Positions 1,379 to 10,114 are shown, counted from the first letter of the stretch. The stretch is 64,000 nt of DNA from Rebecca billardiae RCC1528 (GCA_965240325.2 OZ251236.1:62001-126000), one strand, 5' to 3'. Numbers and translations: made by a program. Notes: a model not told the origin generated them from the sequence alone.

Positions 1379-2947
1379 ATGGAACACGCCTTCCCCAGGC
1401 TCTACGACGACGTCTCTCTCCAGCGGACCCTTAGGGGCCTCGCGTGGAACGCATCAAACAACGCACCACTTACGCAAACGCAGCGCATAATCCGCATCAA
1501 TAGGGTGTTCACGCCCAGCGCGCATCTCTCGCGAAAACAAGCACGAGAACAGCACCGCTACCGCAACATGAAACGCACTTCGACAGCACCTCTTGGCCCT
1601 CGGGCGCAAGCGCACACATCGGCAACGAGATCTCGGCAGAGAGGAGCGGTGAGACAGCATAACCAGAAGCACCCCCCCTCCCAGCGAACAGCGCACCTCA
1701 ACACACATGCGCCCTCCCAACAGGAGCAGCAACTCCAGACCAACCACGTGCCCGACACCGACCCGCCGCCAGAGGACGACCTTCCAGGCGCAGAGGGAGA
1801 GCGATGGGTGCTAGTGCGCAGCGGCTCCCGGCACGACACGGTGCGTCGCACACACATACCCCCCGCGACATGCCCCGCCGTCTCTCCCATTGGGGACTTA
1901 GCCGCGCCGGGCGAGCGTAAATCGCGCGTGGGCGGCCGTTTCGCGCCATTAGCGGCTTTTGCGCCAGAAACGCTCACCGCTAACCCGGACGGGCCGGCGA
2001 AATGCGCGGACGAAAGTCCGGAGCACCGGGCGCGCGCGCCGGATTTGCCGGGCCGGGCGGAGGCGAGGCGTAAAAACCCACTGCCGGTCGCGGGCGTCGC
2101 CAGAACGACGATGGCTGCGACGCAACCGCGACGCCCTGCGCCCGAGGCACTGGCCCGCGGAATGGCTGGCTCGACCGACGGGCCTACCGAGCAGGCGGGG
2201 ACCGTGCGGCCGCGAGAGATGGGGATGGAGAGAGCGCAACCGCAGGCGCAGCGGCAGCGCGTAGACGGCCAGCACGCTGGCGGCTCGACGGAAGATGCGC
2301 CGCGCGGGGCGGTGAAGCTCGAGGACGCTGTGAACAGGAACAACCGCTCAAAGCCCCCCGGGACATGGCAGGCAGCTGCCCGGGGTCCCAGCTGTCTGAA
2401 AGTGCCGAACCGGCCCAGCAGTACCAGGACAGCTGGGAACTACTGCCCTGGCTGGACGCAGCCCCGCAAACACACCCGTGCGCTCAGGTTCGTACTAATG
2501 TGCAGCACCAGAGCACGTTCACGCACCTGCCCTGCGCATCTGCGACGGGCCGGACGACTGCGAAAAGGCAGCACTAGTAGTAGTAGGAGGAAGAGTAGGA
2601 GGAAGACTAGCAGGCATCGAAATCGTCACATCGCCCAAGCCCGGCCGGCACCAGGTGCATCGGTCGATCCATCAAGATTGCCCAGGCAGCGGCCTAAGGG
2701 CAACACAGCACCACCAACAGCAAGGCATGTGCCACTGCGCCGCACTATGTCCTACCACCGGACAGCACTGCCGGTAACCAGGCGTACAGTTCTGGCCTAT
2801 GGGCGCAAGCTTCTGCAGCACGCCGCCAGCAGGGTAGCAGTGCTCTCACAGCCCAGCAGACCAGGCCACGCGGACGCGCAGTGCGCCCAGCCCCCATACC
2901 ACAACAGTGATCGGCAGCAGCCCACACCCCGACCGGTGCCAAAATGA
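1379..2947 (+). CDS. Putative LINE ORF1 (basic, low-complexity, no recognised domain)
   Basis: 522-codon open frame immediately upstream of ORF2. Its TGA overlaps the ORF2 start in ATGA (2944-2947). No RRM or zinc knuckle recognisable. Confidence 0.4.
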   Translation: MEHAFPRLYDDVSLQRTLRGLAWNASNNAPLTQTQRIIRINRVFTPSAHLSRKQAREQHRYRNMKRTSTAPLGPRAQAHTSATRSRQRGAVRQHNQKHPPSQRTAHLNTHAPSQQEQQLQTNHVPDTDPPPEDDLPGAEGERWVLVRSGSRHDTVRRTHIPPATCPAVSPIGDLAAPGERKSRVGGRFAPLAAFAPETLTANPDGPAKCADESPEHRARAPDLPGRAEARRKNPLPVAGVARTTMAATQPRRPAPEALARGMAGSTDGPTEQAGTVRPREMGMERAQPQAQRQRVDGQHAGGSTEDAPRGAVKLEDAVNRNNRSKPPGTWQAAARGPSCLKVPNRPSSTRTAGNYCPGWTQPRKHTRALRFVLMCSTRARSRTCPAHLRRAGRLRKGSTSSSRRKSRRKTSRHRNRHIAQARPAPGASVDPSRLPRQRPKGNTAPPTARHVPLRRTMSYHRTALPVTRRTVLAYGRKLLQHAASRVAVLSQPSRPGHADAQCAQPPYHNSDRQQPTPRPVPK

Positions 2948-5900
2948 TTCAGGGGCATCGCCAGGCTGGCACTGCCAGGCAGACAAGTGAGCAGGCTGCA
3001 GCGGGAAGGCCACAGGCGAGGGGCTCAGGCAACAGGGCTGAGGAACGTTCGCTCACAATCGCCTGTGGGAACGTAGGGGGCATGGCAGGCTTGACACGCA
3101 GGGCAAGACTGCAGAGCATCCTGGACACCAAGCGCTGGGACATCGTTCTGCTCCAAGAGACCGCACTCACTAGAGACAAAGCCACTCAGGACATCCTTAG
3201 TGGCTATACGACCTACCACGACCCAATGCCCCCCAACTCGTGCTCAGGCAGAGGAGTGGCAATAGCAGTGCGGAAGGATGGCAGGCTGCCTCTCTCCAGG
3301 CTGGAGGTGACCCGAAGCGGCACTGAAGGCGGCCAGGACACTGCCGGATACATGCTCCAGGGGCGCCTGGTCTTCACCACCGCCAGGGGTACCAGCTTTG
3401 TGGTGGAGGCCACATCCTTCTACATCCCCCCTAACAGTAACCGCAACAGAGCAACTATACTGCCATGGGTAACAGAAGTCCTCCGCACGGGCACCCCGCT
3501 ACACACGGGCCGACAAGATCTCCTCAGGCTTGCAGGAGGGGACGCCAATGGCACTTGGGAGGTCGGCGAGGCACTTAGGCGGCTCGACACAACACGCGCG
3601 TTCACCGCTCACCGACCAGGGGATTTCAAAGCGGCCATGGAGACAGTGACTGACCTTCACAACATGAAACCAACCGGCAGTTTCAACCCTGCCACCGAAT
3701 ACACCCACTCGAGTGGCAACACCCTGGCCCGACTGGACTACATATTCACCAACATGGCAGAGCTAACGCAACACTTTTGGCACTCGGACCCTCTCCTGGA
3801 GGACGCATGCATCCCTGCGCTCCCCAACGGGGACGGGAGCACCCACCATTTTATCCAGGGTAGAATCCCACTGCACAAGCTGCGGGGGGCCACCAGGCCT
3901 GTGGTCCACGAGCTCTACAGGCCATACAGGTTCTACATAAACCTGGCACACGGAGAGACGGTCAAGGAACTCAAAGCCGCATTATCCGACCCCGTAGAGA
4001 GCGACATCAGGCGGCTGGACGACGTCCACACCCATGCACACCTGTTCGCAGCCCCAGTTGCGACGATTACTGCAGCTCCGCCACAAGTGGTGAGCGACAT
4101 GGAGGAAGCCCTCCCTGCCGTCCTGGAGTGGCTCGCCTCCGTAGCAACTGACAGAGTCACGTCTGCACTCGACTCCAGCCAGCAGCCACGGGAGACCACA
4201 GTAGCCCCTGGCAGGCGGGCCCCCAAAGCGATCGCGCCGAATGCCCTCAGGGATTTCAAACTGGGGAATGCGTACCGCCGCCAGGTCGCAGTGATCACCA
4301 GGCTGCAGCAAATCCGCCCAGGTGCTAGCGAGCAGCACGGGGAAGTGCACACAGGCTTCAGGTACAGCAGCCACAGCAGGCATGGGCGACTTGCGGAGCC
4401 GGTGCGCCTGGCAAAAGCACTGGACAGTTATGAATCGGCACTGACTACCGCAAACGCCCCCCCTGAGGGTATGCCCCAGCCGCTCGGCTTGCCTTTCCCC
4501 ACCCTGGAGGCCATCTACCAGGCTGGGCCCGCCTCGACAGCACAGTGGCTGTCGGAACTGAAAGCACGACAAGCCTTGCACCAAAATGAATACGAGCTCC
4601 TGCAGCGCGAGCACGAGGACACTCTTGCCAAGGACAGGACGAGAAAAATCCAAGACGACATGCGGAGGAAATGCACCCGCCACTTTCGCAAAATGCTCTT
4701 CCCCAAATCAAACCATGCTGGATTCGAGATGATGATGCTCAATGACCTGGACGCTGGCAGTGGGAAAATTACCTCCGACCCAAGCAAAATCAAACGATAC
4801 GCAGAGGCGCACACGGCGAACAACGTGGGGACAGCGCCGAGCTGCAGGCAGGGGCCTGCCATAGAGGATACAAATGAAGCAGTCTGGGAAGAGATCCAAA
4901 GCAGATGGACTCCGGCCCAGCGAGCGCTGGAAAGCTCCCTGCTGGACCTGGAAGGCCTGCGCTCCCTCCTGGCAAAAGCTGACTCGAACGCTGCCCCTGG
5001 TTTGGACGGGATCCAAGTATGCGCCTTGAAACTCTTGATAAAGATCAACAAAGCCTTTGAAGGCATCTTGGTCAACATCGTCAACACAATCCTCCGCGCA
5101 GCGGCTGTACCAGCCCACCTCAAAGACGCAGAGCTTGCCTACTTCTACAAAGGCAAAGGGGACCCTCACGATCTGAACAATTATAGGGGAGTGGCACTCC
5201 AAAGCACTGTGTACAAACTGGCGGCAGCACACAGGGCGAGATGCATCCAGTCGATCTGTGACCAGCTGGGTCTGATCTCGCCGGAACAAGCAGCAGCGAG
5301 CAAGCACGGGCAGCCGGAGCTCCAAGTGGCGGCACTGGTGGCAGCCATGACCCATGCCAAGGCCAGTTCTGCCGAGATCCACGTCACTACATGTGATATA
5401 AGCAAGGCCTTTGACAGAGTGCCCCATGAGTCGCTGAGGAAGGCCCTTCTCCTGCACGGCTTCTCCGCCCAACTAATTGATGAACTTGACCGACTGGACG
5501 CTCACTCTGTGGCCACCACCAGGACCCCCTATGGCCACACTGACAAAGTGCCGATACTGCGTGGGTGCAAGCAAGGCTGCCCGCTAAGTCCCATAAAATT
5601 CTGTCTCTTCATGAACATGTTCATTGCATCCTACTCAGCCAGCCACCCTGACCATGGATACTCGTTTCCAGCCGCCAGGCATGACGCTGGCGCAGGAGAC
5701 TCCCTGAAGGTGCGCATCTTGGGGTACATGGACGACATAGCTTTCCTTGCAGAGTCAGAGACGGACAGCGCCGCCCAAGTGCGCGCACTGGGACTATTCC
5801 TCAGCGCTCACGGCATGGCACTCAACCCCTCGAAGTGTGTGCACGCAAAGAAAGGAAGGGGCAGAGGGGCGCACGGCGCGCCTCCTCTGCCCCCCCTCCG

Positions 5901-8900
5901 CGTTGAGATAGCCGGTGAGCAGGCCACTGTCCCCTCCATCGGACCAGACACCCACTTTGAGTACCTCGGATACGTCCTCACCCTCCACCTCGATTGGTCA
6001 AGGCACGCCGCAAAACTGGAGACAAAGCTGCGCGCGGCCTCCTGGAAAGTGGCAGTAGCGGCCAGGGACCCGGCCTGCCACACTGTGACCACAGGCACTC
6101 TCCTCCAGCATGATGTGGTCTCTGTGGCAGGCTACTACCTGGCTGCGAGCGATGTGCGCCGCTACGGCATCACAGACAAAATGCGCGCCATCGTGATGGA
6201 CATCGTGTGGGGCAGAGCTGGTCTCCCGCCCTCCGCGGCCCGCATAGCAGGCAGTGGGCCAGCCCCCAGCATGGGGATAGGCCCGGAGGAGCCGAGCGCC
6301 CTGCAGGCCGGGGTGCAAGCGGCTGCCCTCCTTCGGACTGCCAACAGCCCCACACAAGTGGGCCTGCTCACCAGGACCTGCCTGGAGGCACACCGACAAC
6401 AACCGGCCAACGGAACACTGGCGCCCCCTGCAGTGAGAGGCGGAATGGAGGCCCTGTCGCTCGCGCCCAGGGGCACAGAGCCATGGCTGCTGGCCTGCTC
6501 CGCAACACTGGCCAACCTGACCCTGCGAGAGGCCTGCAGGTCCCCCCTCATCCCTAGCAGGGCCTCTGATCAGGAGAGACTCGTGGAGCTGTTAGCGGAC
6601 TGGGACGCGCGGGACTACGCAGCCCTGGGCGACACCCCCATGGGCACCCTGCTGCAGGCTGCAAGTGCAGGGGGAGACGGCCAGCCTAGCCTGATGGAGC
6701 GCAGCATCCTGAGCGATAATGGCACGTCCATGGAACGCCTGCTCAACGCACAGGGCACCCCAGCTCTCAGCCATCTCACACACACTGGCAGCAGCATGGT
6801 GTGGACGGCTGTGCAGCACCACGCAGGAGCTGCGGAAGCAATGGCAGGCCTCATTGTCCGCACTGCGGTAAAACTGGCCACGAGCCCCGCAAATTTCCTG
6901 TACACCGCCCATCTGCAGGAAGCCAGAACGGCCGCCTATGAGGCAGATGTGCCCACTGCACCAGCAGACGTGACCCAGGCAGCAGCCACCGTCACAGCGG
7001 GGGTAGATGGGTCGTACAAGCCAGACACAGCCACAGGGGCCGCTGGGGCCGCCTACATTGTACATGCCCGTGGCGCAGGCCGGCTGCGAGACCAGGAGTG
7101 CGTGCGCCTGGCAAGTGCCACATACCACGGGCAGCAGACTGCAGCCAACTCGGAGGTGGCATCTGCCACACTCCTCACCAAACTCCTGGCTGGCCTACCA
7201 GGTAGCACCATTCATGTCAGCTGGGACTGCGACGATGCACTCAAGCACCTCCTCTGGGCCAGGCCAGCGTTGGACTCCGCAGCAGGGGGCCAGGCAGCCC
7301 AGCCAAATACCACCCGCCCCCCAGGCTGGGAGCCCAGAATGAGCAAGAATCAGGCCCACAACCCGCACATGTCCAGGCTCCTGCATGTGATTGACGAGTG
7401 CTCTCGCGGCACCACCTGGATGTACTACCCCCAAATGAGCGGCCACTCACGCGGAAGGGGTGGACCATCACTGGACGATATGGTGCGCGAAATTCTCCAG
7501 CCGGAACCGGACGCGTCGGGCGGCACCTACACAGTGCCCCCTCCCCAGCTGGCATCGCTGCGCAGAGCCACCAGGGCCTTCGTGGGCACCGAACCTTCCT
7601 CCGAAGACGTGGACCGCACTGTATGCAACCTGTGTGCGGACTGGGCAGCCAAGCGAGTGGCTGTAGATGGCATGGACCCATCACACATGCTAGGAAAGAA
7701 CGTCTGGCTCCCTGCAGCATATGGGCTGGTGGACACTGCAGGGGCTCTCCTGCAGTCAGGGCCCCTCCCCGTCAGGAGGCTGGTAATAGAGCGCGCCCGC
7801 AGAGCAGCCCTGGAGGCGCGCCTGGATCCCACCCCTGGCAACGACGAGTCCCCCGAACAGGCGGCAGAGAGGCAGCGCAGGAGCGCCAAGTACGCCATCA
7901 AGATGGGGGACGACTCCCTACACACCCAGGAATCCACCCTCTCGCTGCGGAACCAGTTCACCAAGCCAGAGCGCCTCACCAAGTTCGTCCTCAGGTGCTG
8001 CGTCGGGGCGCTGGAGTATAATCAAGATGCTGCAGGGGCCAACCCAGGATTGGATGCAGTCCCATATAGCCAGCAATGGCCGGACTGCACGCTGGGCACC
8101 GACTGTCTGTTCTGCCTCGAGGCAGGATCGGACGCCCCTGGGCCGGACTCTGCCACGCACGTCTTCTGTGACTGCCCCCACGCCGACGCCAGGAGCATGG
8201 CACAGCATAGCATCATCCGGATGCTTGACAAGCGCACTGGCGGCAGGATGCCGATGCAAGACAGGCAAGACCTGGCAGAGCAGGCTACAGCCCACCGGCA
8301 CTACTATGCGGGCCAGATCCCCAAGGCAGTAGTGGCAGCCGCCCAGGAGAGCGCAAAACAGTACCCCTGGCGGACCGCGCGGGACGGGGGAGACAGTAAC
8401 AGCGCCTCTGCCGATGCAGACCAGTCAGACGAGCAGGATGGCCAGCCAGCCGGGCGGGACGGCAGCTACAAGGTGGGAAGCTTACACTCTACCATCGTCA
8501 GCGTCACCACCCACATCCACCACAAGCGCCTCGAGCTAGCTACAGCTGGGACGGAGGGCCGCCAGCGCCGGTACGACCTCGCGCACTTCCTCACCGCTCT
8601 CCGCCGCGGCCGCCTCACAGGGGGAGCGAGCCCCAGAGATGGGCAGACCCAGGGATCGTCCGCCAGCGGCCCAAGACTCACACCCTCCCCTGACCGAACA
8701 CAGGGCCCCCGACCCCCATCAAGCAGCCAGGAGGGCCCAGCAGGGGGGCGCCAGCCCCCGGCCGGCAGCAGGGCCCCTCCACCCCCTGGCCCACTGGCCC
8801 AGCAGGAACCTGGCCAACAGGCCCTCAATGCCTACTATGCAGCAGCTGAACTGCAGGATGCTGACGTCGATGGCACTGGTGCCAACTGCGGGTTCCTTGC

Positions 8901-9423
8901 GGTACTGGGCGTCACCCGCGCAGGGGCCCGCGAAGACCCAGCAGGGGCAACCAGGAGCGCCCAGGCACTGAGGCAAGCCACCGTACAGCACGCCCTGTCC
9001 CTGAGTGCGCAGCACCAGGGGGTCCTGGCGGCCGCAGTGGCCCTCCAGCCGGCCCACCTCGAGCCCGATGGGAGCGCACAGAGGGCAGCAGCAGCGGCTG
9101 CCACCCTGGGCACGGTTCGAGAGGCTGGCACCCCGTTGGCAGATGCACTCCTCCCCTGTGTGGCAGCAGGGGCGAACACCACAGTCGTCCTGGTCACCAG
9201 AGACCCTCACACCGGCGCCCCTCTTCGTATGGTCCAGGTCTTCCACAGCCCAGGCTCCCCCCAGTACAACCGGCACGACCCGCTGCACATTGAGGTGCTA
9301 CCCTGGCCCCAAGTGGCCACCAGGCTGGCAGCGGGCGCACTCGGACAGACCAGGGTCATCTCTCACTGGAGAGGCCATTACAGGACCACAGTCCCAAGGG
9401 CACTGCCAGGTCAGGCCCACTGA
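2944..9423 (+). CDS. LINE ORF2 polyprotein: AP endonuclease + reverse transcriptase + RNase H + CCHC finger + C-terminal OTU-like domain
   Basis: APE: IACGNVGG, DIVLLQET, GGDANG, RLDYIF. RT: APGLDGI, NYRGVAL, DISKAFDRV, GCKQGCPLSP, YMDD, FEYLG. RNase H: VDGS, NSEV, WDC, GHS, NLCADWAAK. CCHC: CLFC...HVFCDC. OTU-like: VDGTGANCGFLA...HWRGHY. Confidence 0.93.
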   Translation: MIQGHRQAGTARQTSEQAAAGRPQARGSGNRAEERSLTIACGNVGGMAGLTRRARLQSILDTKRWDIVLLQETALTRDKATQDILSGYTTYHDPMPPNSCSGRGVAIAVRKDGRLPLSRLEVTRSGTEGGQDTAGYMLQGRLVFTTARGTSFVVEATSFYIPPNSNRNRATILPWVTEVLRTGTPLHTGRQDLLRLAGGDANGTWEVGEALRRLDTTRAFTAHRPGDFKAAMETVTDLHNMKPTGSFNPATEYTHSSGNTLARLDYIFTNMAELTQHFWHSDPLLEDACIPALPNGDGSTHHFIQGRIPLHKLRGATRPVVHELYRPYRFYINLAHGETVKELKAALSDPVESDIRRLDDVHTHAHLFAAPVATITAAPPQVVSDMEEALPAVLEWLASVATDRVTSALDSSQQPRETTVAPGRRAPKAIAPNALRDFKLGNAYRRQVAVITRLQQIRPGASEQHGEVHTGFRYSSHSRHGRLAEPVRLAKALDSYESALTTANAPPEGMPQPLGLPFPTLEAIYQAGPASTAQWLSELKARQALHQNEYELLQREHEDTLAKDRTRKIQDDMRRKCTRHFRKMLFPKSNHAGFEMMMLNDLDAGSGKITSDPSKIKRYAEAHTANNVGTAPSCRQGPAIEDTNEAVWEEIQSRWTPAQRALESSLLDLEGLRSLLAKADSNAAPGLDGIQVCALKLLIKINKAFEGILVNIVNTILRAAAVPAHLKDAELAYFYKGKGDPHDLNNYRGVALQSTVYKLAAAHRARCIQSICDQLGLISPEQAAASKHGQPELQVAALVAAMTHAKASSAEIHVTTCDISKAFDRVPHESLRKALLLHGFSAQLIDELDRLDAHSVATTRTPYGHTDKVPILRGCKQGCPLSPIKFCLFMNMFIASYSASHPDHGYSFPAARHDAGAGDSLKVRILGYMDDIAFLAESETDSAAQVRALGLFLSAHGMALNPSKCVHAKKGRGRGAHGAPPLPPLRVEIAGEQATVPSIGPDTHFEYLGYVLTLHLDWSRHAAKLETKLRAASWKVAVAARDPACHTVTTGTLLQHDVVSVAGYYLAASDVRRYGITDKMRAIVMDIVWGRAGLPPSAARIAGSGPAPSMGIGPEEPSALQAGVQAAALLRTANSPTQVGLLTRTCLEAHRQQPANGTLAPPAVRGGMEALSLAPRGTEPWLLACSATLANLTLREACRSPLIPSRASDQERLVELLADWDARDYAALGDTPMGTLLQAASAGGDGQPSLMERSILSDNGTSMERLLNAQGTPALSHLTHTGSSMVWTAVQHHAGAAEAMAGLIVRTAVKLATSPANFLYTAHLQEARTAAYEADVPTAPADVTQAAATVTAGVDGSYKPDTATGAAGAAYIVHARGAGRLRDQECVRLASATYHGQQTAANSEVASATLLTKLLAGLPGSTIHVSWDCDDALKHLLWARPALDSAAGGQAAQPNTTRPPGWEPRMSKNQAHNPHMSRLLHVIDECSRGTTWMYYPQMSGHSRGRGGPSLDDMVREILQPEPDASGGTYTVPPPQLASLRRATRAFVGTEPSSEDVDRTVCNLCADWAAKRVAVDGMDPSHMLGKNVWLPAAYGLVDTAGALLQSGPLPVRRLVIERARRAALEARLDPTPGNDESPEQAAERQRRSAKYAIKMGDDSLHTQESTLSLRNQFTKPERLTKFVLRCCVGALEYNQDAAGANPGLDAVPYSQQWPDCTLGTDCLFCLEAGSDAPGPDSATHVFCDCPHADARSMAQHSIIRMLDKRTGGRMPMQDRQDLAEQATAHRHYYAGQIPKAVVAAAQESAKQYPWRTARDGGDSNSASADADQSDEQDGQPAGRDGSYKVGSLHSTIVSVTTHIHHKRLELATAGTEGRQRRYDLAHFLTALRRGRLTGGASPRDGQTQGSSASGPRLTPSPDRTQGPRPPSSSQEGPAGGRQPPAGSRAPPPPGPLAQQEPGQQALNAYYAAAELQDADVDGTGANCGFLAVLGVTRAGAREDPAGATRSAQALRQATVQHALSLSAQHQGVLAAAVALQPAHLEPDGSAQRAAAAAATLGTVREAGTPLADALLPCVAAGANTTVVLVTRDPHTGAPLRMVQVFHSPGSPQYNRHDPLHIEVLPWPQVATRLAAGALGQTRVISHWRGHYRTTVPRALPGQAH

Positions 9424-9499: not shown

Positions 9500-9525
9500 G
9501 GGGGGGGGGGGGGGGGGGGGGGGGG
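9500..9525 (+). repeat. Poly-G tract (26 nt) in LINE 3' UTR
   Basis: Uninterrupted G run, preceded by further G-rich runs at ~9471-9485. Confidence 0.9.
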
Positions 9526-9604: not shown

Positions 9605-10114
9605 CGGCGAGTCCAACTACTACTAACTTCGGCGAGTCCAACTACTACAAACTTCGGCGAGTCCAACTACTACTAACTTCGGCGAGTCCAACTACTACTA
9701 ACTTCGGCGAGTCCAACTACTACTAACCTCGGTGAGTCCAACTACTACTACTAACTTCGGCGAGTCCAACTACTACTAACTTCGGCGAGTCCAACTACTA
9801 CTAACTTCGGCGAGTCCAACTACTACTAACTTCGGCGAGTCCAACTACGACTACTAACTTCGGCGAGTCCAACTACTACTAACTTCGGCGAGTCCAACTA
9901 CTACTAACTTCGGCGAGTCCAACTACTACTAACTCAGGCGAGTCCAACTACTACTAACTTCGGCGAGTCCAACTACTACTAACTTCGGCGAGTCCAACTA
10001 CTACTAACTTCGGCGAGTCCAACTACTACTAACTCAGGCGAGTCCAACTACTACCAACTTCGGCGAGTCCAACTACTACTAACTCAGGCGAGTCCAACTA
10101 CTATTAACTTCGGC
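9605..10114 (+). repeat. Tandem minisatellite, 20 copies of 25-bp CGGCGAGTCCAACTACTACTAACTT
   Basis: Units start at 9605, 9630 ... 10086. Two units are 28 bp (one extra triplet). Few substitutions; no spacers. Confidence 0.97.

Follow-up and report, generated by a model that had tools for sequence, protein, structure and literature searches.

Why does ORF2 of a LINE from the alga Rebecca billardiae continue for some two hundred residues behind its zinc knuckle, and what could such a tail do for a retrotransposon? The element lies in a 64,000-nt stretch of DNA from strain RCC1528 (GCA_965240325.2 OZ251236.1:62001-126000), which as a whole is called the window below; the genome of the host alga is very GC-rich. 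The features of the element, all numbered from the first nucleotide of the window, are as follows:

1379-2947, + strand: candidate ORF1, 522 aa, Arg-rich, taken from the ORF list
2944-9423, + strand: ORF2, 2159 aa, collinear in BLASTP with the environmental LINE proteins P0003-P0007
3070-3753, + strand: APE-type endonuclease, aa 43-270 (Pfam PF03372, E 6.7e-6, 26.5 bits, cut-off 24.5)
5173-5976, + strand: reverse transcriptase (RT), aa 744-1011 (Pfam PF00078, E 1.9e-23)
7003-7653, + strand: RNase H-like region containing a long insert (VDGSY ... ANSE ... WDCDD ... CADWAAK)
8104-8178, + strand: CCHC zinc knuckle (CLFC...H...C), aa 1721-1745, from the sequence pattern
8179-8595, + strand: conserved post-knuckle stretch (HYYAGQIPK ... 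HKRLELA ...), aligned with L001, L002, P0005 and P0007
8596-8808, + strand: Pro/Gly/Ser/Gln-rich linker, aa ~1885-1955 (16 Pro and 13 Gly in 76 residues)
8809-9396, + strand: predicted OTU-fold cysteine protease domain, aa 1956-2151, from AF2 models, structure matches and invariant residues
9421-9423, + strand: ORF2 stop codon, TGA
9500-9525, + strand: 26 consecutive G in the 3' UTR
9605-10114, + strand: tandem array of 20 x 25 bp, 3' of ORF2 (TRF: 20.2 copies, 93% matches)

ORF2 is a single uninterrupted frame of 2159 codons, in which an APE endonuclease, an RT, an RNase H-like region, the CCHC knuckle, a conserved helical stretch and a linker precede the terminal domain of ~195 aa. The APE domain is located N-terminally to the RT within one ORF, which is the arrangement that defines APE-type non-LTR retrotransposons (LINEs). 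The BLASTP matches to P0003-P0007 cover aa 36-1184 and 1346-1794, and in P0005 and P0007 they extend up to the C-terminus. The region 7003-7653 finds no match in Pfam; a profile-profile comparison of our clade alignment A3 with the Pfam-positive RNase H domains of P0008, P0009 and P0012 (probability 76%, E 2.3e-5, first half only) lends partial support to its assignment as a putative RNase H. The CCHC knuckle is kept in P0002/L001, P0003 and P0005-P0007. An RNase H and a CCHC knuckle downstream of the RT would together give a layout like that of the I group. The linker, which on the basis of its composition is presumably flexible, varies in sequence among the relatives and is not conserved. 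The stop codon of the candidate ORF1 overlaps the ORF2 start in an ATGA, and from its position only we infer that 1379-2947 is the true ORF1; it belongs to no Pfam family, and a comparison with the first 880 aa of the relative P0005 gave no significant match. The 25-bp array is probably the 3' tail region of the element. No direct repeat that could represent a target-site duplication was found flanking the element, which is apparently a full-length, intact and young LINE.

The last ~210 residues of ORF2 contain DVDGTGANCGFLAVLG (with Cys1982, nt 8887-8889), AQALRQ, and RVISHWRGHYRTTVP, which holds His2145 (nt 9376-9378). The preliminary description of this locus, made from the sequence alone, had quoted these segments behind the knuckle and the Pro/Gly linker as the marks of an OTU-like protease, and all of them are located where it placed them; the domain it delimited is real, but its proposed start at 8850 falls inside the first helix/strand, and the modelled domain begins at ~8809. 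Profile annotation misses this domain entirely. The Pfam OTU family (PF02338), against which the preliminary description had suggested that the tail be checked, gives no match at E<=10 either with this domain or with P0001, P0002, P0005 and P0007. Pfam scans of the complete ORF2, three parts of it and the tails of the relatives returned no OTU match, and the gathering threshold of PF02338 was not reached. Likewise, neither single-sequence nor profile searches of the PDB revealed a significant match to any solved OTU structure; the sole sequence matches of the family profile, weak and sub-threshold, were OTUD3 and EschOTU, both aligned on the Cys loop. An exhaustive HMMER search retrieved only two relatives at E<=0.001, both LINE-borne, hence there is no sequence bridge to ordinary OTUs. 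A word-index search with aa 1950-2159 among full-length proteins found nothing, and of the 600 pattern matches in a metagenome locus scan with alignment A1 none was confirmed. Since Pfam overlooks such a domain, accessory enzymes on retroelements may be under-counted.

The assignment to the OTU fold is based on two AF2 models, built from three input sequences (pLDDT 77.2) and from seven (pLDDT 84.6; all five models of this run score 80-85). Comparison with 48,161 PDB representatives by VIA-align gave OTUD3 (4bou) with Z 12.4 and 12.9 for the two models (138 and 133 of 141 residues aligned), OTUD1 with Z 11.9 and 12.8, and yeast Otu2 with Z 11.4 and 12.0. All of rows 1-32 are OTU-type, and the first unrelated row has Z 3.6-3.9. 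Among the best 50 rows of Foldseek, OTU structures account for 49 with the first model and for all 50 with the second (best E 3.8e-4, probability 1.00). In the ESM Atlas, a search by shape led to PF02338/PF10275 clusters, and the first cluster found by features also carries PF02338. With both models the top matches in Foldseek and VIA are solely OTU deubiquitinases, so that the predicted structures show the terminal domain to have the OTU fold that had been proposed for it. The insert in the helical lobe (domain residues ~86-113) is poorly modelled.

Could the tail nevertheless be an accident of this single copy, i.e. a host exon, a read-through or a chance extension of the ORF in GC-rich DNA? 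The sole support for such a reading is the absence of Pfam matches, while the same domain follows the same CCHC knuckle in frame in L001, L002, L003 and L004, and occurs at the same place in environmental LINE fragments and full-length ORFs on contigs from independent samples; hence its motifs are not due to chance. Between the relatives L003 and L004 the dN/dS ratio is 0.34 for the OTU domain, 0.21 for the RT and 0.28 overall, which shows that in this sister lineage purifying selection acts on the domain with about the strength seen in the rest of ORF2. The recurrence behind the knuckle in L001, L002 and other independent environmental LINEs refutes the accidental origin, which we consider virtually inconceivable. 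Two relatives that lack the domain, P0003 and P0006, have no OTU remnant downstream of their stops. Sister lineages with and without the domain thus offer a natural comparison.

The residues expected of an OTU catalytic centre are found at the expected points of the chain, with one exception. Cys1982 (C32 in domain numbering) opens the first core helix, which starts at residues 29-32 in the models, behind a G-x-G-x-N-C loop; a Cys in a loop of the G-D-G-N-C type at a helix N-terminus is characteristic of OTU proteases. His2145 (H195) opens the last beta-strand (residues 195-200) within an H-Y/F motif, again as in OTU proteases, and arithmetic on the VIA ranges would place it, to within ~1 residue, in the terminal part of OTUD3 where the His of that enzyme is located. 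In accordance with the conservation of the motifs foreseen for related copies, C32 and H195 are invariant in an alignment of 10 sequences that share 27-41% identity with the window's copy. The exception is the canonical third residue of the triad, an Asp, Asn or Glu. At His+2, where OTUD, OTUB and viral OTUs usually have Asp or Asn, the window's copy has Arg2147, and Arg is invariant at this position in all members of the alignment; any third catalytic residue would therefore be non-canonical. It may be supplied from elsewhere, and D24 (domain numbering; Asp1974 of ORF2), invariant across the alignment, is a candidate; Trp2121 is a further candidate for orienting the His. In addition, the Cys loop of the window's own copy is degenerate (GTGANC): the Asp at Cys-3 is replaced by Gly, and is lost in the window's subgroup. 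Sister LINE lineages from metagenomes bear the canonical VPGDGNC loop, and DADVPGDG(N/D)C is present in P0005, P0007 and P0034-P0044.

The Arg at His+2 and the loss of the Asp at Cys-3 might suggest a catalytically dead OTU fold, retained to bind ubiquitin or to dock proteins, for which there is a precedent in pseudo-OTUs without catalytic residues, such as FAM105A. However, a module that only binds would have no reason to retain the Cys and the His together, and it is precisely the nucleophile and the general base that are invariant among lineages with just 20-41% identity, in which most other positions vary. We therefore regard a dead domain as unlikely.

Our preferred interpretation is that the last ~195 residues of ORF2 are a highly diverged cysteine isopeptidase of the OTU fold, an integral and inherited component of part of this APE-RT-RNase H-CCHC clade, acting as a tethered deubiquitinase; we assign it a probability of roughly 0.6. 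The domain would be catalytically active by virtue of its Cys-His pair and, suspended on a flexible linker of ~70 residues at the end of ORF2p, would strip ubiquitin or a ubiquitin-like modifier from targets in its vicinity. The most likely targets would belong to the element itself, its proteins or its RNP, and loss of the modifier would protect them from ubiquitin-dependent degradation; alternatively, the domain could work where the endonuclease has nicked the DNA, on chromatin or on repair factors. This compact domain of ~200 aa provides a handle on the question of whether LINEs must resist ubiquitin-dependent restriction.

An active domain could also serve as a processing protease, cleaving in cis the polyprotein encoded by ORF2, or ORF1p, for instance to free itself or to separate the modules; OTU-fold proteases encoded by arteriviruses (PLP2) and by tymoviruses process polyproteins in this way. 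The long and probably flexible linker that precedes the domain would suit such a role, and viral proteases do occur among the VIA matches, albeit with low scores (TYMV Z 4.3-4.7, MRFV 3.0-3.5, PRRSV/EAV PLP2 ~2.5), but the best structure matches are cellular OTUD-type deubiquitinases rather than viral processing proteases. Moreover, we found no conserved Gly-Gly or LxGG site in ORF2 or its relatives: RGG was observed twice, with 1.0 occurrences expected, and P0001, P0002 and P0007 lack the LTGG found in the window's linker. For want of a conserved Gly-Gly site, self-processing is less likely than a tethered deubiquitinase, and we judge it distinctly improbable.

A more specific variant can be derived by analogy from the nearest structural neighbours, OTUD3, OTUD1 and Otu2. 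Both OTUD3 and Otu2 take regulatory ubiquitin off proteins of the 40S subunit. The structure of yeast Otu2 was solved on this subunit in its ubiquitinated form. The LINE domain might thus be directed to ribosomes, as the element's own antagonist of ribosome quality control, which would help the translation of a GC-rich ORF of 6.5 kb. A preprint on 2A peptides (2026) linked ORF2p-associated deubiquitinases to relief of stalling-dependent protein loss. We consider this variant a long shot; if true, the domain would represent an OTU subfamily of its own, characterised by Arg at His+2.

How does the terminal domain compare with known OTUs? With the OTUD deubiquitinases (OTUD3, OTUD1 and Otu2) it has a common fold across nearly the whole core of ~140-150 residues (Z 12-13, 133-144 residues aligned), including a helix after the Cys loop and a His with which the last strand begins, and VPGDGNC is common to the LINE relatives and OTUD3. 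On the other hand, it shares only 9-16% identity with them, escapes PF02338, has an additional insert of ~30-50 residues in the helical lobe and Arg instead of Asp/Asn at His+2, and is fused to the C-terminus of ORF2p instead of being encoded by a host gene. The vOTU of the nairovirus L protein (VIA Z 9.3-10.8) likewise resides inside a polymerase polyprotein, and is a deubiquitinase and deISGylase, not a processing protease; in contrast to the LINE domain, it is N-terminal, belongs to an RNA-virus RdRp and has the canonical H-x-D.

Among mobile elements, several classes of transposons have independently gained proteases of the ubiquitin pathway: Helentrons and Ginger1 have OTU, Mutator transposons and NeSL have Ulp1, and Dualen has Josephin. 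Such domains are a precedent for a deubiquitinase on a transposon. The published papers, on Dualen, NeSL/Utopia, Helentrons and Ginger1, agree with the background that the preliminary description had given on Dualen, NeSL and Helitrons. The OTU cysteine proteases encoded by Helentrons and Ginger1, which were proposed to aid transposition via the ubiquitin pathway, belong to DNA transposons and are recognised by Pfam/CDD (pfam02338), whereas the LINE OTU is not. NeSL/Utopia non-LTR elements carry Ulp1, a protease of ubiquitin-like modifiers, which differs in its fold family (Ulp1/SENP), in its N-terminal position and in its association with RLE-type elements. Dualen/RandI is a non-LTR element whose polyprotein comprises a Josephin-like cysteine protease, APE, RT and RNase H. 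Both have a deubiquitinase-type cysteine protease together with APE and RT, but the protease is Josephin there and OTU here, and Dualen adds a restriction-like endonuclease; the Pfam scan of ORF2 detected neither PF02099 nor an RLE signal, which sets the element outside Dualen/RandI. The RT tree places the Josephin-bearing P0010 in another clade than the window's element, and the distant RT matches include Haematococcus proteins with PF02099, RT and APE.

The order APE-RT-RNase H-CCHC-OTU, which the preliminary description did not recognise as a standard LINE architecture, is indeed non-standard in the literature searched, with the caveat that an OTU deubiquitinase domain on ORF2p of a dinoflagellate (Symbiodinium necroappetens) was mentioned in passing in the 2026 preprint on 2A peptides. 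An OTU tail is a rare add-on for LINEs, but an OTU domain on a LINE ORF2p is not wholly new. In Symbiodinium the domain is N-terminal and found together with a 2A-like peptide and an additional RT domain, whereas in the window's element, in which we found no 2A-like motif, it follows the RNase H-like region and the CCHC knuckle at the C-terminus; in both cases an OTU-type domain is fused to the ORF2p of a LINE.

The preliminary description read the end of ORF2 as an OTU-like cysteine protease, which the element would use as its own deubiquitinase or processing protease. The region in question was modelled as a domain at aa 1956–2151 (nt 8809–9396, plus strand) and closes the following arrangement:

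Features of the element and its 3' flank (positions in the window, or ORF2 residues where stated)
1379–2947, upstream Arg-rich ORF of 522 codons, whose stop overlaps the ORF2 start codon (ATGA)
2944–9423, plus strand, ORF2, 2159 codons with no interruption
ORF2 aa 43–270, APE-type endonuclease (Pfam)
ORF2 aa 744–1011, reverse transcriptase, RT (Pfam)
ORF2, C-terminal to the RT, RNase H-like region
ORF2 aa 1721–1745, CCHC knuckle
ORF2, between the CCHC knuckle and the linker, conserved helical stretch
ORF2, directly before the last ~200 residues, Pro/Gly/Ser/Gln-rich linker of ~70 residues
9500–9525, perfect run of 26 G behind the ORF2 stop
9605–10114, tandem array of 20 x 25 bp (93% matches), after the 26-G run

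Sequence searches alone say little about whether the tail is an OTU domain. The two strings quoted for it do lie in frame, with the Cys of GTGANC at aa 1982 (nt 8887–8889) and the His of the terminal GHYRTT at aa 2145 (nt 9376–9378). The Pfam check proposed for the tail was negative: the OTU model gave no match at E<=10 in ORF2 or in any relative, and phmmer and profile searches of the tail against all PDB sequences returned nothing significant. HMMER, run exhaustively against 1.84 billion representatives, found only P0001 and P0002 (E 3e-21 and 4e-17), both encoded on short metagenome contigs that are 3' parts of related LINEs; they share the RNase H end, knuckle and tail with the element studied here and also have a linker. 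A first hint came from the ESM Atlas feature search, in which some members of the top cluster (score 0.93) have PF02338.

The fold was settled as OTU by structure prediction. AlphaFold2 gave pLDDT 77.2 and pTM 0.77 with three sequences, and pLDDT 84.6 and pTM 0.82 with an alignment of seven (three alignment rows left out), for which all five models scored 80–85. In Foldseek searches of the PDB, OTU deubiquitinases took 49 of the 50 top places with the first model and all 50 with the second; OTUD3 was the best match (E 3.8e-4 to 5.7e-4, probability 1.00), and TM-scores normalized by target reached 0.71 (OTUD1). VIA, a Foldseek-independent search of 48,161 representatives, identified OTUD3 (Z 12.4/12.9; 138 and 133 of 141 residues aligned, rmsd 3.5/2.9), OTUD1 (Z 11.9/12.8), yeast Otu2 (Z 11.4/12.0), a Wolbachia OTU (Z 11.4/11.7) and nairovirus OTUs (about 10); the first unrelated chain appeared at Z 3.6–3.9, after 32 OTU-type entries. 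Since the modelled domain is mixed alpha/beta and not a helical bundle, these values lie well above the background stated for the tool. The Atlas shape search led to PF02338 and PF10275 clusters. In the models the first core helix starts with the Cys and the last strand with the His, as in OTU enzymes. VIA aligned model residues 9–201 with residues 54–188 of the OTUD3 chain, and by arithmetic on these ranges, as opposed to a measured superposition, the Cys and His would fall within about one position of the OTUD3 loop Cys and C-terminal His strand.

A search with the RT region revealed five close whole-element relatives (P0003–P0007, 36–38% identity over the RT, E ~1e-81 to 1e-84). The same domain closes two of these proteins, P0005 (3009 aa) and P0007, where the Cys loop takes the canonical OTU form, DADVPGDGNCLLYAALG, and the terminal motif is GHFRAV. 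A profile built from a five-sequence alignment added eleven further fragments, including a third subgroup (P0042, P0044) with VPGDGDC and HFRTTIP that bridges the other two. One fragment with the canonical loop, P0043 (117 aa), comes from a deposited genome assembly (NCBI GCA_041443065.1). Against the PDB, the family profile and the P0005 tail matched only OTUD3 and EschOTU, at non-significant E-values of 0.5–1.6, aligned on VPGDGNC. The ten aligned sequences are 27–41% identical to the window's copy, and all keep Cys32 and His195 (domain numbering; aa 1982 and 2145), together with Asp24, Gly27, Gly29, Ala36, Trp171 and Arg197. The OTU reading is thus upheld at the level of the predicted fold, by the AlphaFold2 models, Foldseek and VIA, and at that of the catalytic dyad, by the invariant Cys and His.

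Two features are atypical of the known enzymes. At His+2, where OTUD, OTUB and viral OTUs have Asp or Asn, every member of the LINE-borne family has Arg, and the Asp at Cys-3 has been lost in the window's subgroup. Inactive OTU domains such as FAM105A exist; hence catalysis by the LINE domain is no more than likely. The Arg would also suit a pseudo-enzyme that only binds its partner, but this explanation fits poorly, because the Cys and His are precisely the pair that is invariant.

As for function, we prefer a tethered deubiquitinase: the predicted Cys-His isopeptidase, carried at the C-terminus of ORF2p by a long flexible linker, could remove ubiquitin near the RNP, either from proteins of the element itself or at the nicked target. 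Mammalian hosts are known to restrict LINEs by degrading their proteins in a ubiquitin-dependent manner (UBR2/TEX19.1, L1 ORF1p). The other proposed role, that of a processing protease, seems less likely: two RGG occur where 1.0 would be expected, the LTGG of the linker is not a conserved site in the relatives, and the tymovirus and arterivirus OTU proteases of the processing type match the domain only weakly in structure. The nairovirus OTUs, fused to a polymerase like the LINE domain, serve as deubiquitinases and have no part in polyprotein processing.

Several independent samples yielded contigs in which the domain follows the same knuckle in frame. Comparing L003 with L004, the DNA loci of P0005 and P0007, gave a Nei-Gojobori dN/dS of 0.34 for the OTU domain, 0.21 for the RT and 0.28 overall, so that in this lineage the tail is under roughly the same constraint as the remainder of ORF2. 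In the RT tree the window's element and P0003–P0007 form a clade (support 100/99) with the window's element as the first branch, and the other members divide into P0003+P0006 and P0004+P0005+P0007. The OTU domain is present in P0005 and P0007, and the P0004 sequence stops at the contig end; P0003 and P0006 have complete C-termini with neither an OTU domain nor a remnant of one downstream. Instead, P0003 (L006) ends in a long acidic tail rich in Asp, and P0006 (L007) in a Pro/Thr-rich one. One gain and one loss require as many steps as two gains. From the sequences we prefer a single origin with later loss, because the unusual Arg and a leader (LNA-Y-A ... DAD) are common to both OTU groups, and because the exhaustive HMMER search detected no sequence relatives outside these LINEs.

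Other parts of the element are less clear-cut. Pfam does not detect the RNase H-like region, and only its first half matches, in profile-profile comparison, the Pfam-positive RNase H of distant LINE proteins (76% probability, E 2.3e-5). The 522-aa upstream ORF belongs to no Pfam family and does not resemble the first 880 aa of P0005; hence this candidate ORF1 either evolves very fast or is not a real gene. G+C content is 59–65% in the element and 70–88% in the flanks. No second copy was found within the window, nor was a target-site duplication of the element found when looked for. Some 350 bp of moderate-GC sequence separate the tandem array from the next gene. The apparent 5' edge (1300–1340) lies some tens of bases from the start of a minus-strand host ORF (435–1337), and the element may therefore sit in the 5' region of that gene.

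A full-text literature search found no description of a C-terminal OTU domain on an APE-RT-RNase H-CCHC LINE; an association of OTU domains with LINEs is nevertheless not without precedent, since a Symbiodinium ORF2p with an OTU deubiquitinase domain at its N-terminus is mentioned in a 2026 preprint. Among the distant RT relatives, P0010 and P0013 from Haematococcus lacustris combine PF02099 (Josephin) with APE and RT; they are Dualen-like LINEs with a deubiquitinase of a different family, and P0010 falls outside the clade of the window's element in the RT tree. OTU domains have been documented in DNA transposons (Helentrons and Ginger1), Ulp1 in NeSL and Utopia LINEs, and Josephin-like proteases in Dualen LINEs and one Penelope-like element. 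The predicted OTU tail described here is a variant of this known theme of transposon-borne proteases of the ubiquitin pathway.
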